Of a DNA stretch of 64,000 nt, positions 7,427-51,020 are shown piece by piece. Source of the stretch: Paramoeba atlantica (Eukaryota > Protista > Discosea); the NCBI GenBank assembly GCA_977017575.1, contig CDRNVI010000026.1, positions 248,001 through 312,000 on the forward strand, read 5' to 3'. A program made the position numbers and the translations under genes. The notes under the pieces were generated by a model. That model had not been told where the DNA came from and did not search any database. It saw only the letters and a program-made list of their open reading frames with translations. The number at the start of each line of letters is the position of its first letter. Position 1 is the first letter of the stretch.

Positions 7427-8209
7427 ATGATTTTCGCTGTGAGTAGCGTGTTATTTCACACGCTAGGTCACCGCTTCTCTGGAAAGGATGTCAGCGACAT
7501 AATCCGACGTCCGGCTAAGGTATCTTCTTCGATACTTCCCGCCGAACATGATTTGATACGCCTTATTCAAGGTGTAAAAAATCCCGATCCCTCGTGGACT
7601 CCGGACACTCCTGCCTGCGATTGGGTCGGTGTCAGTTGCAACGATGCAGAAAAGGTGCGAGCAATACGCTGGGAATGGATGCAAAGTTTATATGGAACTC
7701 TGTCCCTGCGCTATTTACCGGTATCGCTTGTATCATTTTCAGTGGACCGAACGTTTAATTTGGCACATGAAAATAAACTTAGTGGGGAAATCGAATTAAC
7801 GAGCCTTCCAGCAGGTTTGACTGACTTCAACCTCAGCGAAAACCGATTTAATGGTAGTGTAGATCTTACCTCCTTGCCTGAAAATCTAACACACTTGTAT
7901 TTGAATGGCAATGACTTATGCGGAGAGGTTTGTCTGGATTATTTGCCCTTGAAATTGCAACATCTTAGCCTAAGTAAGAATCATTTTACCGGAACGCCCA
8001 TTTTAACCAAGCTACCTCCCGCATTGGTATCTCTCGGCTTGTCGCAGAACCAATTCGAGGGTCATATCAATTTGGACGCCCTGCCTTTAAGCTTAAAACA
8101 TTTATGGCTAGATGAGAATAAGGAGCTCTCAGGAACCTATAGTCTTAATATGCTTCCTAAGTGCATAAGTCTAACATGCACCTCAACCGGCCTCTCAAGG
8201 TGGAATTAG
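7427..8209 (+). CDS. LRR protein (23-aa repeat family), paralog 1
   Basis: RRPAKVSSSILPAEHDL N-motif, W..DTPACDWVGVSC cap, LP..L..L.L..N.F.G.I.L repeats. Confidence 0.85.
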   Translation: MIFAVSSVLFHTLGHRFSGKDVSDIIRRPAKVSSSILPAEHDLIRLIQGVKNPDPSWTPDTPACDWVGVSCNDAEKVRAIRWEWMQSLYGTLSLRYLPVSLVSFSVDRTFNLAHENKLSGEIELTSLPAGLTDFNLSENRFNGSVDLTSLPENLTHLYLNGNDLCGEVCLDYLPLKLQHLSLSKNHFTGTPILTKLPPALVSLGLSQNQFEGHINLDALPLSLKHLWLDENKELSGTYSLNMLPKCISLTCTSTGLSRWN

Positions 8210-8817
8210 CCCAAAGGAATTAACCGAATATAAAATGAGGGGCTGCGGGTGGATCGTCTGAATGTCTTGCCGCTCATGAAGAGTTAATCTTCGATATTTA
8301 GGCATATAAAGTGCGAGTTTCGATTAGAAAGAAAAGCTACTAATTATGATAAAAAATGTACCTCTTGGTGCACTGAGTATGACAATCCTATAAATTGTGG
8401 TACACTGCGTATGACAATTTGGTGCACTGACATTGACAATCCACCTATCTTTTCCGTTATGGAAACATACGGAATATAGCTCGTCATTTCGAAATTTGTT
8501 CACGAATTAATATTTCACATTTTTTTATTTTAGGGTATCTTTATTTCACAAAATTTTACGACCGCTGTACCCCATACACAGCAGTGGTGTAGAAACTCCA
8601 TTTACAGCGCTTAGGCACTCAAAATCACATGATAGAAAGAATTGCGCCGCGAAGCGGCGTGCTTTTTTTTTGAGGGTCGAAAAGTTTTCACCCTCGACCT
8701 GAAACATACAACCGCGGCACTATAAGTGGGGAGGGGGCACAGTATCCTTCCTTCCACTGTATGTTTTTTAAAAGCAAACACGTCTTTCCCATCTCCTTTT
8801 TCCCCTCTCCCCCCTCC

Positions 8818-48842: not shown

Positions 48843-49343
48843 TTTTTACACTTCTTTTTCAAGCATTTCTATATTTTTCTGTACAGTACAGTATAAGTTT
48901 AGAGGTTTTATATAGTAGTAGATTTAATACTTTAGTGGCCTATAGCATAGTTTACCTACCCTGTAGTAACCTAGTACAGGTAAGCACGATAGGTATTTAT
49001 ATCATAGGACCTCACGGGTCTATTTTGAGCTTAAAAAGATTGTTAGAGTGAGAAGGGCACAACACTCCTTGTTGGAAACGATGTCATTCTTGAAAAGAGG
49101 AAAGACCAAAACAAGGAAAAGAAATAAAATCGCGGAAGACGTCTACTGAAACGCGTTTTCTTGACAGAATTTCATGAAAGCGTAGTGTTGAGCTTTCACT
49201 GGCAAACATCAGACATATTAAATTGTTGTACGCATCATAAAAACATTTTAAGCACAGGCGTACATCTCAATACCCAAATAATCAACCAAATAGTCAACAC
49301 CTCTTTCAAAAACGATTAAAAGGTTTCTATTATCACTTCTGCT

Positions 49344-51020
49344 ATGCATTTTATACCCTCTTTTTGTGACGATGCACAGCCACCGTCACGGCGATCTTCT
49401 TCACCCGGATTACACAAAACACCTGCTACTGCTGTTGGCAAAGTTCACTCCTACGCCCTCCCGGTGGTATACGACCTCGCACGTCTGGTGGAACACATCA
49501 GCAACCCCCACCCCTCGTGGACCTTAGAGACGCCCCCCTGTTCGTGGGATGGGGTCACGTGCGATCCCCCCACCGGGGCTGTCACGGAGCTGCGCTGGAT
49601 GGATCGCGGATTACGTGCGAGAAATTTCTCCCTGCAACATCTTCCTCGTACGCTGCATCTCGTGGATCTCTCTGGCAACAATCTACGGGGTACGGTGCTG
49701 CTGAACGCGCTGCCAGATACCTTGCGAGAGCTTGTGATGGACAGAAATCTTTTGCATGGCGAAATCGATTTGTGTGACCTTTCGGAGGCCTTGGAACGGT
49801 TGAGCTTGGCGCATAACCAGTTTCAGGGTTCCGTAGAACTTGCCTCACTTCCTCCTCACTTGCGTATTCTGTGCTTAAATGAAAACGCGTTCGAGGGAGA
49901 AATTGCTTTGGGGAAGCTCCCTAATACGCTCGAAGGCATGGATCTGTCGGAGAATCAATTCCATGGGACCTGCGTACTTGATATGTTTCCTCCTTCTCTT
50001 AAGAGTTTGAGACTAAGCAAAAATAAATTGTCGGGCAATTTGTATTTTGAAGCCCTTCCGCGCGGACTCGAGGATCTAGTGATCAATGAAAATAAATTTC
50101 AAGCAGAATTAAAATTCCAGAACTTACCTCCCGCACTCCGTTGTCTTCAATTGGAAAATAACCAATTTTCGGGTCACATTGACACGTCAAGTTTTCCGAA
50201 TGAAATACAACTTGTTTTACTGTACAGCAATCTCTTTACAGGGCAGTTTCTTTTTGAATCCCTTCCTAATTTGCAGTATCTTTCCCTCGCGCATAATAAA
50301 GTGACAGGTAAAGTGCCTCCTAATGTACCTCTTCCGGAGGTTGAAATGCTAAACCTCCATAAATGCGATTTCGAAGGTCCATTCGATATGACGACTCTCC
50401 CGCCCACCTTGAAGTTCTTACTTCTCTATGGGAATCGCTTTGATGGACAGCTCGACCTAAATCATTTGCCGTTGGAGATACAGATGCTCAACGCGGCACA
50501 TAACCAGTTTACTGGGTCTATTTCCTTGGACCAACTACCCGTTGGATTGAACGAACTACGCCTTGGGGGTAATAATTTAGATGGTACGCTGCTGCTTACG
50601 CACCTTCCAGACTCCTTGGAGCATCTTCACCTGCAAGAAAATTTATTTACAGGAGAAATAGATCTTTCTGCGCTTCCTGAGAGGCTAAAAAGTGTACGAC
50701 TCCATCAAAATGCGCTCACAGGAGCTGTACATAGTGAGAATCTCCCAGAATCTCTCGAGGAATTATCCCTTCATAGTACTTTCCTCCACGTATGCATCGA
50801 CAAATATCACCATCCCCCCAATCTGGATATTTCCCCAATCTTGGAGACCACCGTTTGGGTATTAGACAAAGCGGGGAAGGTGTGCCGCGTTCCTTTCAAG
50901 GGTTCTAAACACTGCTTAATGGTATGGGATGTGCAAGGCTCCAGCACTGCGGAAGAAATACAGCATCGGTACGGTGAGTTCCTTTTTGATCAAGATTACG
51001 TGGAAGAGGAAGCCCTGTAG
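49344..51020 (+). CDS. Long LRR protein (~17 repeats), paralog 13
   Basis: GKVHSYALPVVYDL motif, W..ETPPCSWDGVTC cap, long 23-aa repeat array. Confidence 0.9.
   Translation: MHFIPSFCDDAQPPSRRSSSPGLHKTPATAVGKVHSYALPVVYDLARLVEHISNPHPSWTLETPPCSWDGVTCDPPTGAVTELRWMDRGLRARNFSLQHLPRTLHLVDLSGNNLRGTVLLNALPDTLRELVMDRNLLHGEIDLCDLSEALERLSLAHNQFQGSVELASLPPHLRILCLNENAFEGEIALGKLPNTLEGMDLSENQFHGTCVLDMFPPSLKSLRLSKNKLSGNLYFEALPRGLEDLVINENKFQAELKFQNLPPALRCLQLENNQFSGHIDTSSFPNEIQLVLLYSNLFTGQFLFESLPNLQYLSLAHNKVTGKVPPNVPLPEVEMLNLHKCDFEGPFDMTTLPPTLKFLLLYGNRFDGQLDLNHLPLEIQMLNAAHNQFTGSISLDQLPVGLNELRLGGNNLDGTLLLTHLPDSLEHLHLQENLFTGEIDLSALPERLKSVRLHQNALTGAVHSENLPESLEELSLHSTFLHVCIDKYHHPPNLDISPILETTVWVLDKAGKVCRVPFKGSKHCLMVWDVQGSSTAEEIQHRYGEFLFDQDYVEEEAL

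Follow-up and report, generated by a model that had tools for sequence, protein, structure and literature searches.

The window analysed here, a stretch of 64,000 nucleotides from an assembly filed under Paramoeba atlantica, contains an array of genes for leucine-rich repeat (LRR) proteins with a conserved N-terminus, and the question is what these proteins are for and whether their N-terminus addresses them to a place outside the cell that makes them. A motif scan and tblastn of the window revealed 13 LRR loci (c01 to c13), all on the + strand between positions 7391 and 51020, in agreement with the 13 paralogs in 44 kb of a preliminary description. The genes are intronless, each being a trans-spliced unit in a same-strand array, and 11 of the 13 loci have open reading frames, c04 and c07 being disrupted:

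7391-8209, + strand: c01, LRR gene, probable start ATG 7427, about 6 LRRs; degenerate motif RRPAKVSSSILPAE at 7505-7546 (alignment of the 13 copies)
13253-13254, + strand: trans-splice acceptor AG of c02 (transcript L013)
13288-13926, + strand: c02, intact LRR gene, 212 aa, exact protein in MMETSP transcript L013; motif RPAKVRGTFLPQEY at 13327-13368
14678-15328, + strand: c03, intact LRR gene, start ATG 14696; motif LPNKVRGAILPGEY at 14735-14776
16100-16864 and 17141-17200, + strand: c04, broken LRR copy
24671-24672, + strand: trans-splice acceptor AG of c05 (transcript L077)
24703-25341, + strand: c05, intact LRR gene, start ATG 24709; motif at 24748-24789
26553-27176, + strand: c06, intact LRR gene with degenerate N-motif STPVFGAEIPQVE and canonical cap
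29112-29561, + strand: c07, truncated LRR copy retaining leader, KVRG (29148-29189) and cap
33592-34311, + strand: c08, intact LRR gene, 239 aa, first cap Cys missing; motif RRAAKVRGASLPQE at 33628-33669
39846-40538, + strand: c09, intact LRR gene with degenerate motif RRSQFRHASMPE and without the cap cysteines; probable start ATG 39897
42117-42824, + strand: c10, intact LRR gene, start in use most likely ATG 42237 (MIYSSFANAAD...); motif RLGKIRGVHLPTEY at 42285-42326
44908-45531, + strand: c11, intact LRR gene, 207 aa; motif RPSKVRGAILPQEY at 44947-44988
45811-46563, + strand: c12, intact LRR gene, start ATG 45856; degenerate motif KLGKVSMASLPQE at 45880-45921, preceded by NLS-like PPKRRK
49344-51020, + strand: c13, LRR gene, 558 aa, the sole long member of the 13, about 14-17 LRRs; degenerate motif GKVHSYALPVVY at 49440-49472

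The transcripts and the neighbourhood of the array were used to identify the organism. The MMETSP transcriptome of P. atlantica contains exact matches to window proteins, transcripts carry the spliced leader, and CDC48 is 75 % identical to that of Perkinsela CCAP 1560/4, the nearest named sequence, and 69-72 % identical to those of other kinetoplastids. No paraflagellar rod, radial spoke or IFT57 genes were found in the assembly; calreticulin, which was found there, served as a positive control that eukaryotic families are detectable, and the flagellar-gene searches were run with no eukaryotic control genome. The source of the DNA is a spliced-leader kinetoplastid of the P. atlantica culture, apparently without a flagellum; the preliminary assignment to a kinetoplastid stands, and this organism is most likely a Perkinsela-like endosymbiont of the amoeba. 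Since its genome (45.7 Mb including haplotigs vs 9.5 Mb published for Perkinsela) is far larger and the flagellar absences come without a control genome, the endosymbiont identity is probable rather than proven.

The best named sequence and structure matches of the LRR proteins are plant LRR receptor kinases, as would be expected of plant or algal contamination or of a horizontally acquired plant receptor cluster. This origin is refuted by the kinetoplastid spliced leader on the transcripts. It is also at odds with the intronless same-strand array lying beside a CDC48 nearest to that of Perkinsela, with the low identity to plant proteins (17-25 % in structural alignments), with the lack of a transmembrane (TM) segment or kinase and with the repeat, which has 23 aa (NxFxGxVDLxxLP) whereas the plant repeat has 24 (NxLxGxIPxxL). 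A plant origin is extremely improbable.

Transcripts exist for at least four copies or their alleles (c02, c10, an allele of the c05 type and one of c12), two of them joined to the spliced leader, which speaks against a set of mostly untranscribed genes. Transcript L013 of c02 begins with the spliced-leader tail GTTTCTGTACCTTGTTG, joined at 13255, and transcript L077, an allelic form of c05, carries the tail CTTGTTG joined at 24673. These junctions, situated 34-36 nt before the ATG, exclude longer N-termini from upstream ATGs in c02 and c05. For c10, an RNA-like contig (run X5) matches 42209-42933 with zero differences and starts 28 nt before ATG 42237, which argues against a longer N-terminus from an upstream ATG. 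Another X5 contig covers 46211-46519 with 8 differences from c12 and therefore represents a c12 allele. The 'RNA' label of run X5 is presumed and is backed by the spliced-leader tail CTGTACCTTGTT joined at 47817.

Alignment of the 13 copies gave one order of parts: a short leader, the motif, the cap W..C.W.GV.C and then 23-aa repeats with the consensus LPxxLxxLxLxxNxFxGxVDLxx (161 units), the exposed positions of which are highly variable. The proteins are usually about 200-330 aa long and end in a short C-terminal strand after the repeats. The short copies of the window have 4-6 repeats and family members in general 4-8, rarely about 17; in c13 a regex counted 14 and the protein length leaves room for about 17, in line with the range of about 4 to about 17 reported at first. 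LRRNT_2 scored above the Pfam cut-off in c06 (23.4 bits, residues 23-56), c12 (23.6 bits) and c13 (24.8 bits) and just below it in c01 (20.4 bits). LRR_4 was also detected in c13 (E = 2.9e-14), and the C-terminal tail of this protein (about 80 aa) matched no known domain. The two cysteines of the cap, joined by a disulphide in plant ectodomains, are retained in 41/46 and 44/46 members. Neither a TM-typical 19-residue hydropathy window outside the leaders nor a GPI-like or hydrophobic C-terminal tail was found in 48 members, and the window LRR proteins contain no Pfam kinase domain.

The AF2 models of c02 and c11 had pLDDT values of 89.8 and 92.8, respectively, with the cap helix of c11 at residues 25-32. 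Superposition of c11 residues 22-207 on the SERK, BAK1, HAESA and PSKR ectodomains (VIA-align) gave Z of 19-20 and rmsd of 2.0-2.4 Å. The predicted fold matches the plant SERK/BAK1 receptor ectodomain type: fold and size are the same, and an N-cap helix is followed by W..C.W.GV.C, but the canonical signal peptide, the membrane anchor (TM helix) and the kinase of the plant proteins are absent. The structural alignment of c11 begins where the signal peptides of the plant receptors have just ended, and the leader occupies their place.

The leader, 12-38 aa long, comprises Met, a short hydrophobic stretch, A-D, a polar linker, sometimes with KRRK, and the nearly invariant R-x-x-K-V-R-G. Its likeness to a signal peptide was assessed by hydrophobic run length. 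The longest run has a median of 3 residues and reaches 8 or more in 2/46 members, so that the leaders are far less hydrophobic than the signal peptide of calreticulin from the same organism, with its 12-residue core, and in approximately 13 % of members a hydrophobic leader is absent altogether. Judged by this measure, the leaders do not appear to be canonical cleavable signal peptides, and the earlier impression of no obvious signal peptide, TM segment or kinase was borne out. The leaders nonetheless form a graded series, from the signal-peptide-like one of P0067, which is fully hydrophobic and ends ...VSLA|DE ahead of RGRVRN.LPDEF, down to none, with the start at MD. They may be weakened signal peptides in which the A|D junction would mark the old cleavage site. 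A mitochondrial presequence does not fit the leader, its acidic D speaking against it.

Leaders so weak, or lacking hydrophobicity altogether, suit a cytosolic reading, according to which the proteins stay in the endosymbiont cytosol as LRR adaptors or scaffolds, KVRG-xx-LP extends the cap as a structural element and the hydrophobic A-D leader is left over with no part in sorting. The predictors applied by Tanifuji et al. to a Perkinsela member of the family were likewise negative for every signal, and it was called cytosolic (PMC5601477). Against retention in the cytosol, all close structural relatives are extracellular, about 90 % of members preserve the cysteines of the cap, and a useless relic leader would not stay recognisable across two endosymbiont lineages with a CDC48 identity of only 75 %. 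The conserved motif provides evidence on both sides.

KVRG or KIRG is present in c02, c03, c05, c07, c08, c10 and c11, degenerate in c01 (KVSS), c12 (KVSM), c13 (KVHS), c06 and c09, and missing in c04. Among 48 members, K, V, R and G of the motif are conserved in 43, 45, 41 and 42, respectively, and L, P and E at the start of the cap helix in 47, 47 and 45. Since every synonymous codon is in use at the conserved motif residues, selection acts on the peptide. A constraint at the DNA level, in the form of a hidden polypyrimidine-AG splice acceptor in the leader and motif, was rejected for the same reason; A-D, for example, is GCA GAC in c02 but GCC GAT in c05.

In the c02 and c11 models KVRG falls within residues 1-20, which have low AF2 confidence and no secondary structure and remain outside the fold whether the input alignment is shallow or deeper. 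In these models the motif is not simply a structural part of the LRR cap: as an N-terminal element of its own it survives for the KVRG half, which lies outside the modelled cap, and falls for the LPxExxL half, which is merely the first helix of the cap. This counts against the cytosolic reading. In its favour, RxxKVRG is always two residues ahead of the cap helix (LPxEYxL), and such an invariant spacing fits a structural cap extension better than a free sorting signal. Taken with the evidence from the leaders, cytosolic retention is possible but doubtful.

Classical export motifs, found downstream of a signal peptide, are the Plasmodium PEXEL (RxLxE/Q/D), the oomycete RxLR and the Toxoplasma TEXEL (RRLxx). 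The proteins described here resemble those systems in layout, with a conserved basic motif that follows a hydrophobic leader and short spacer and precedes variable cargo in a large family, and differ from them in the sequence and spacing of the motif, in a leader that is mostly too weak and in the rigid tie of the motif to the cap helix. None of the three motifs is present, as RGxxLPxE places Leu at +4 and Glu at +7 from Arg, and neither is the PTS2 pattern ([RK][LVI]x5[HQ][LA]), KVRGxxLPQ having Pro at position 8 and Gln at 9. Within the window, the motif was not found on any non-LRR protein. That leader and RxxKVRG together form a dedicated, lineage-specific export or maturation signal, leading to the amoeba cytoplasm or, through the members with KRRK, to its nucleus, is unlikely.

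The family extends far beyond the window. An N-domain search of the organism's own 45.7-Mb assembly gave 1,907 first-look candidates, and all 150 scored places matched (E <= 4e-21), spread over at least 60 contigs and nearly all in open frames of 112-570 aa. The idea of a local expansion had to be given up for a genome-wide family of hundreds of members. At least 462 'leucine-rich proteins' of unknown function, about 9 % of the predicted proteins (462/5,252), were reported for Perkinsela (Tanifuji et al. 2017, Sci Rep, Supplementary Note 1.4; PMC5601477), and the LRR expansion named at first for Perkinsela-type genomes is correct. Those of Perkinsela CCAP 1560/4 are also hundreds of small LRR genes of a Paramoeba endosymbiont, many of them transcribed. 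A literature search found no paper on this LRR family besides the 2017 supplement. The expansion itself is already on record; the leader, the cap, the fold and the mobile-element attack are not described in that supplement.

Nor is an N-terminal motif private to this organism supported, since a leader that looks related is present in Perkinsela CCAP 1560/4. By eye only, its protein c3259AC shows the same repeat type and the leader plan of M, hydrophobic stretch, A-D, G[KR][VL] and cap helix, and the plan M-hydrophobic-AD-xSLG[KR][VL]-helix is common to c3259AC and P. aestuarina transcripts. The motif itself differs, being RxxKVRGxxLPxEY here and SLG[KR][VL]D..S..Q..LME in the Perkinsela of P. 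pemaquidensis and P. aestuarina; P0020, a protein of the SLG[KR][VL] type, has no near-identical copy in this genome. The nearest ESM Atlas clusters are from Euglenozoa (433 and 75 members), and a word-based search listed no NCBI Perkinsela match. Leishmania PSA-2/GP46 and Bodo saltans bodonin are likewise multi-copy kinetoplastid LRR families thought to bind other proteins, but PSA carries a GPI anchor and bodonin some seven TM helices (Jackson et al. 2016, PMC4728078), and neither anchor nor TM domain is present in the 48 members examined here. By BLAST, Tanifuji et al. could not link the bodonins to the Perkinsela family (PMC5601477).

Copies arise by tandem duplication and are lost to transposable elements, as the preliminary description had it. 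c02-c03 and c04-c05 form a segmental duplication in which c04 is a broken copy of c02, homologous to it only at 16431-16662 and 17141-17222; it lacks the N-motif, and an insert takes the place of about 226 bp of LRR coding sequence. Two mobile elements are located here:

16663-17140, + strand: retroelement copy in c04, 478 bp, 5'-truncated, young, multi-copy
17224-24497, no strand assigned: composite element with terminal inverted repeats (TIRs), 7.27 kb, in the spacer after c04, where it splits the duplicated c04/c05

The retroelement has 40 near-full-length matches elsewhere in the genome (97-99 % identity; 315 first-look candidates). Its 3' end abuts readable LRR coding sequence (LxxNxF.G) in about half of 20 sampled copies, and the three copies with a non-element 5' flank are all preceded by LRR-like LP..L sequence. 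TIRs 33 nt long (91 %) bound the composite element at 17224-17256 and 24465-24497, a second TIR pair of 35 nt is nested, and parts of the element recur genome-wide; on contig C59 the c03-c05 spacing is about 2.8 kb shorter. The LRR homology of c07 stops near 29420, and the sequence downstream (29425-29705) belongs to a dispersed repeat present in about 10 copies of 80-87 % identity.

The 2 dead copies among 13, a young element with at least 40 copies landing in or beside LRR coding sequence, and a dN/dS of 0.79 between c03 and c05 (93.6 % DNA identity) would be in keeping with a largely dispensable family, produced by runaway tandem duplication in a genome that tolerates repeats and serving at present mainly as a landing pad for LRR-targeting retroelements. 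This is very unlikely, considering that nearly all 150 scored N-domains lie in open frames, that the motif is conserved despite free synonymous codon use, that allelic pN/pS is 0.37 and that several copies are transcribed and trans-spliced. Strong diversifying selection is unsupported by the same dN/dS and pN/pS values; the 18 non-synonymous vs 2 synonymous changes in the c03/c05 N-domain are too few to reach significance.

The joint best explanation, to which we give a probability of about 0.5, is that this lineage-specific family of small soluble LRR proteins consists of binding modules with a decayed signal peptide as leader, that part of the family is exported and that RxxKVRG is a tag. 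The LRR proteins would be interchangeable protein-binding modules, and RxxKVRG a linear sorting, processing or docking tag common to all cargoes. With a weakened signal peptide as leader, some members at least would leave the endosymbiont by its secretory pathway. Perkinsela has a single bounding membrane, and secretion to the host has been proposed (PMC5601477); with one membrane between endosymbiont and host, these proteins could reach the endosymbiont surface or the host cytoplasm. The family grows by tandem and segmental duplication and loses copies to mobile elements, including the young retroelement, the sampled copies of which lie mostly beside LRR coding sequence. As to function, we infer a repertoire of variable binding proteins, which the host may receive by export.

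The LRR family is at least as large here as in the published Perkinsela genome, where a supplement paragraph covers it. It offers handles for testing: a plant co-receptor ectodomain fold, an N-terminus fixed by the spliced leader and a peptide-level tag at the place of a signal peptide. Perkinsela in Paramoeba is the textbook case of a eukaryote living permanently inside another one, and a non-photosynthetic case. Should the proteins not leave the endosymbiont, theirs is a lineage-specific expansion of an ordinary kind. Proteins that reached the host would be candidate effectors, the first for the Paramoeba-Perkinsela symbiosis, and, were the export tag real, one eukaryote would possess a repertoire of effectors directed at another, carrying an address tag that would differ between endosymbiont lineages. 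Since amoebic gill disease of farmed salmon is due to related Paramoeba species, this host-endosymbiont biology also has some applied interest.

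A six-frame motif scan combined with tblastn of candidate ORFs against the window located 13 LRR loci (c01 to c13, in positional order), all in the same orientation. The other long genes of the window are also on the + strand, and this layout is that of a kinetoplastid polycistronic array.

Coding features of the window
7391-51020, + strand, 13 LRR loci
8761-11187, + strand, CDC48
43266-44618, + strand, pseudouridine synthase
47844-48842, + strand, pRiA4_ORF3-domain protein

The reading frames are intact in 11 of the 13 copies, c04 and c07 being disrupted. Ten intact copies encode 195-260 aa with 4-6 repeats each; the remaining one, c13, is longer, at 558 aa and about 14-17 repeats. 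The common plan reported in the preliminary description (leader, basic motif, cap W..C.W.GV.C and 23-aa repeats) is visible in the alignment of the copies. The repeat consensus derived from 161 units is LPxxLxxLxLxxNxFxGxVDLxx, with an entropy of 3.3-4.0 bits at the x positions. Among Pfam families, LRR_1, LRR_4, LRR_8 and FNIP were matched weakly and LRRNT_2 scored above the cut-off in c06, c12 and c13. No transmembrane segment or hydrophobic C-terminal tail was found in any member examined.

The neighbouring genes show some features of their own. CDC48 has a Pro-rich N-terminal extension of ~30 aa, and its C-rich to G-rich composition islands had been observed previously. In the 47844-48842 protein the PRiA4_ORF3 domain is strongly supported (E = 4.5e-53) and the tail is rich in Lys; a 335-aa cluster relative is present in the P. 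atlantica MMETSP set. A high-copy repeat occupies 46531-47515, between c12 and the pRiA4 gene; in three DNA-like runs its contig depth is 10-50x the flanking depth, and many of the contigs are broken.

Transcripts link the array to a kinetoplastid. The c02 protein is present letter for letter in the transcriptome contig L013 (1,069 nt), an exact transcript of c02 that begins with GTTTCTGTACCTTGTTG, after which the genomic sequence takes over at window position 13255, right after an AG. The prefix represents the 3'-terminal part of a spliced leader of kinetoplastid type, of which a genomic copy lies at 2176-2213. L077, a transcript of an allelic form of c05, has CTTGTTG at its start, joined after the AG at 24671-24672. 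An RNA-like contig covers 42209-42933 (c10) with zero differences, starting 28 nt before the ATG at 42237, and a contig with 8 differences over c12 is read as an allele. All expression evidence derives from a single small transcriptome in the form of assembled contigs, in which c11 was not covered; since the pseudouridine synthase gene was not covered either, missing coverage is no proof that the remaining copies are silent. Run X5, the source of the c10 and c12 contigs, is putatively RNA; this is supported by a contig in which the spliced-leader tail CTGTACCTTGTT is joined at 47817, ahead of the pRiA4 gene, which is thus expressed.

Entries of the MMETSP0151 Paramoeba atlantica transcriptome match further family members and the neighbouring pRiA4 protein. 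The CDC48 from the window shows 75 % identity to the Perkinsela sp. CCAP 1560/4 orthologue and 69-72 % to CDC48 proteins from other kinetoplastids. Paraflagellar rod, radial spoke and IFT57 families gave no match in the 45.7-Mb assembly, in which calreticulin was matched. The most economical reading is that the genome belongs to a Perkinsela-like endosymbiont of P. atlantica or of a close relative; this is only probable, since the flagellar absences lack a eukaryotic control genome and the published Perkinsela genome, at 9.5 Mb, is far smaller and less repeat-rich. On a second contig, C59, the order of the array is unchanged and the mobile-element content differs, so C59 represents the other haplotype.

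The earlier proposal that copies are born by tandem duplication and die by transposon insertion is supported by features of the window. One duplicated unit accounts for the pairs c02-c03 and c04-c05, whose four matching DNA segments are 86.5-97.4 % identical. Of c02-like sequence, c04 retains no more than two stretches, of 232 nt and 82 nt, and between them a 478-bp insert (16663-17140) has taken the place of about 226 bp of coding sequence. The inserted sequence is a copy, truncated at its 5' end, of a young element with at least 40 near-full-length matches at 97-99 % identity, most of which reach further 5' (L057-L076). Of 20 copies sampled, about half have readable LRR coding sequence, LxxNxFxG, lying directly against the 3' end of the element (...GTATGATCATAACC), and the three with non-element 5' flanks have LRR-like LP..L sequence upstream; the element behaves like an LRR-motif-targeting retroelement. 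The spacer after c04 contains a 7.27-kb composite element (17224-24497) with terminal inverted repeats, 33-nt outer and 35-nt nested, only pieces of which recur elsewhere in the genome. Since the c03-c05 spacing is about 2.8 kb shorter on C59, the copy of that haplotype is probably shorter. In c07 the LRR homology is lost near 29420, where a dispersed repeat begins. The dN/dS of c03/c05 was 0.79, their cap region showing 18 non-synonymous and 2 synonymous changes, too few for significance, and the allelic pN/pS of five copies was 0.37. Selection looks moderate: the allelic value indicates purifying selection, relaxed in comparison to housekeeping genes, and there is no clear signal of diversifying selection.

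The family extends well beyond this locus. A profile of 12 aligned copies gave 3,005 first-look candidates in the same genome, and scoring of 150 candidate places yielded 216 matches. The N-terminal-domain profile gave 1,907 candidates, and all 150 scored places matched (E <= 4e-21), on at least 60 contigs and nearly all in open frames of 112-570 aa, so the repertoire is not locally expanded as had been supposed. With haplotigs allowed for, family size is in the hundreds and may approach a thousand. Beyond this genome, matches to the full N-terminal domain (profile positions 1-80) were confined to small proteins, about 110-330 aa long, and those of traceable source come from assemblies of this organism or Paramoeba transcriptomes. 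In large bacterial or metagenomic proteins the match is limited to the cap part (positions 38-80). Three proteins show other module arrangements. The 22-kb metagenome contig encoding P0045 (L016 1912-10617; 2,901 aa) includes a response-regulator gene as well, and 20 stretches of this protein match the W..C.W.GV.C region, so LRRNT_2-like caps seem to occur also as internal repeats in an apparently bacterial giant protein. The other two are multi-module relatives: P0049 (855 aa, ENA contig) has four cap-plus-LRR modules in one frame, and P0067 (678 aa, ENA contig) has two modules behind a full signal-peptide-like leader.

A probably related family has been recorded in Perkinsela. It is absent from the main text of Tanifuji et al. 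2017 (PMC5601477), and Supplementary Note 1.4 of that paper lists 462 members by BlastP and hundreds more by tBLASTn, with RNA-seq support for many, no link to bodonin found and a significance called unclear. One member in its tables, c3259AC, begins with MCSLVFLQSADSSLGRLDYASLSQEALMEMLIEG. The same "type B" leader is found in P. aestuarina and other MMETSP transcripts (P0009, P0017, P0019) and in P0020, of which no near-identical copy was found in the present genome. Two endosymbiont lineages therefore share one leader plan: M, a hydrophobic stretch, the residue pair A-D, a short linker, G-[KR]-[VL] and the cap helix. The leader letters differ between them, and RxxKVRGxxLPxEY is the version of this lineage; the N-terminal motif had been described as private, which the similar leader in Perkinsela does not support. 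The nearest ESM Atlas clusters are from Euglenozoa (433 and 75 members), with one labelled Discosea, which we take as the amoeba label of MMETSP data. The family is probably already known but unstudied; this analysis adds its fold, the position of its N-terminus, and a leader and motif that are conserved and specific to the lineage.

In the AlphaFold2 models of c02 (22-sequence alignment, pLDDT 89.8) and c11 (51 sequences, pLDDT 92.8), residues 25-32 form a helix, behind which lies a regular LRR solenoid; in both of them residues 1-20 are of low confidence and without secondary structure. The top Foldseek matches were the ectodomains of BAK1, SERK2, PRK6, SRF6 and BIR3. VIA-align superimposed 174-180 residues on plant ectodomains (Z 19-20, rmsd 2.0-2.4 Å), pairing model residues 22-207 with plant chains whose aligned part begins at about residue 26-31, immediately behind the signal peptide. 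Since the alignment starts there, the motif splits in the models into LPxEYxL, the predicted N-cap helix of an LRRNT_2 domain, at which the Pfam match of c06 begins, and RxxKVRG, placed just outside the homologous fold where plant receptors have their signal peptide.

With 40 further paralogues from about 35 contigs, 48 sequences could be anchored on the motif. K was conserved in 43, V in 45, R in 41, G in 42, L and P in 47 each and E in 45, with Arg at position -3 in 36. All synonymous codons of every motif residue are in use, so conservation acts on the peptide and not on DNA. KVRG and LP are always two residues apart, and a variable stretch of about 6 to 30 residues separates A-D from KVRG. 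In some members the linker contains KRRK-type clusters (c12, L043, L054, L040, P0006, P0014); such KRRK/KKKR clusters before KVRG (PPKRRK, PPLKRRK), e.g. at 45856-45921 in c12, resemble a classical nuclear localisation signal.

The 46 sequences with an assignable start codon have a median of 19 aa before K and a median longest hydrophobic run of 3; a run of 8 is reached in only two, and about six have no hydrophobic part and start with MD. The calreticulin of this organism, in contrast, has a textbook signal peptide, MLLLFLLGFLAPLCPTLRA/E, so the view that the copies have no obvious signal peptide was confirmed. This calreticulin (L079 1432-2664; G000, contig C20) ends in ...SFYEL, which is not a KDEL-type retrieval signal. 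The weakness of the leaders and the fixed spacing of KVRG to the cap helix speak for the main rival explanation, in which the proteins act as adaptors in the cytosol and KVRG belongs to the cap as a structural appendage; c3259AC was likewise negative in all targeting predictors and called cytosolic (Tanifuji et al. 2017, PMC5601477).

Other features of the N-terminus point to export. The leader of P0067 reads ...FCLFLGFILAVLFTPQGVSLA/DETEL..., then RGRVRNAQLPDEF, with A-D exactly at the expected cleavage site, and L022, L040, L036 and L055 have 8-13 hydrophobic leader residues, most members having 4-6. Judged from sequence, the leaders look like a graded series of a decaying or weakening signal peptide, with A-D at the cleavage point. 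In plant ectodomains the two cap cysteines form a disulphide, and the equivalent residues are retained in 41 and 44 of the 46 members, respectively. In addition, solved structures show this fold only in extracellular domains. Perkinsela has one bounding membrane and a glycoprotein-rich surface, secretion to the host having been proposed (PMC5601477).

The original observation of an LRR family is sound and its anatomy is now well defined: the genes are expressed and encode small soluble LRR modules in which the concave face is variable and an N-terminal extension is conserved at the peptide level. At about even odds, the family would consist of binding proteins at least some of which leave the endosymbiont, with RxxKVRG possibly serving as a linear tag for sorting, processing or docking. 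Export to the host, if true, would raise a moderately interesting family to one of high interest.
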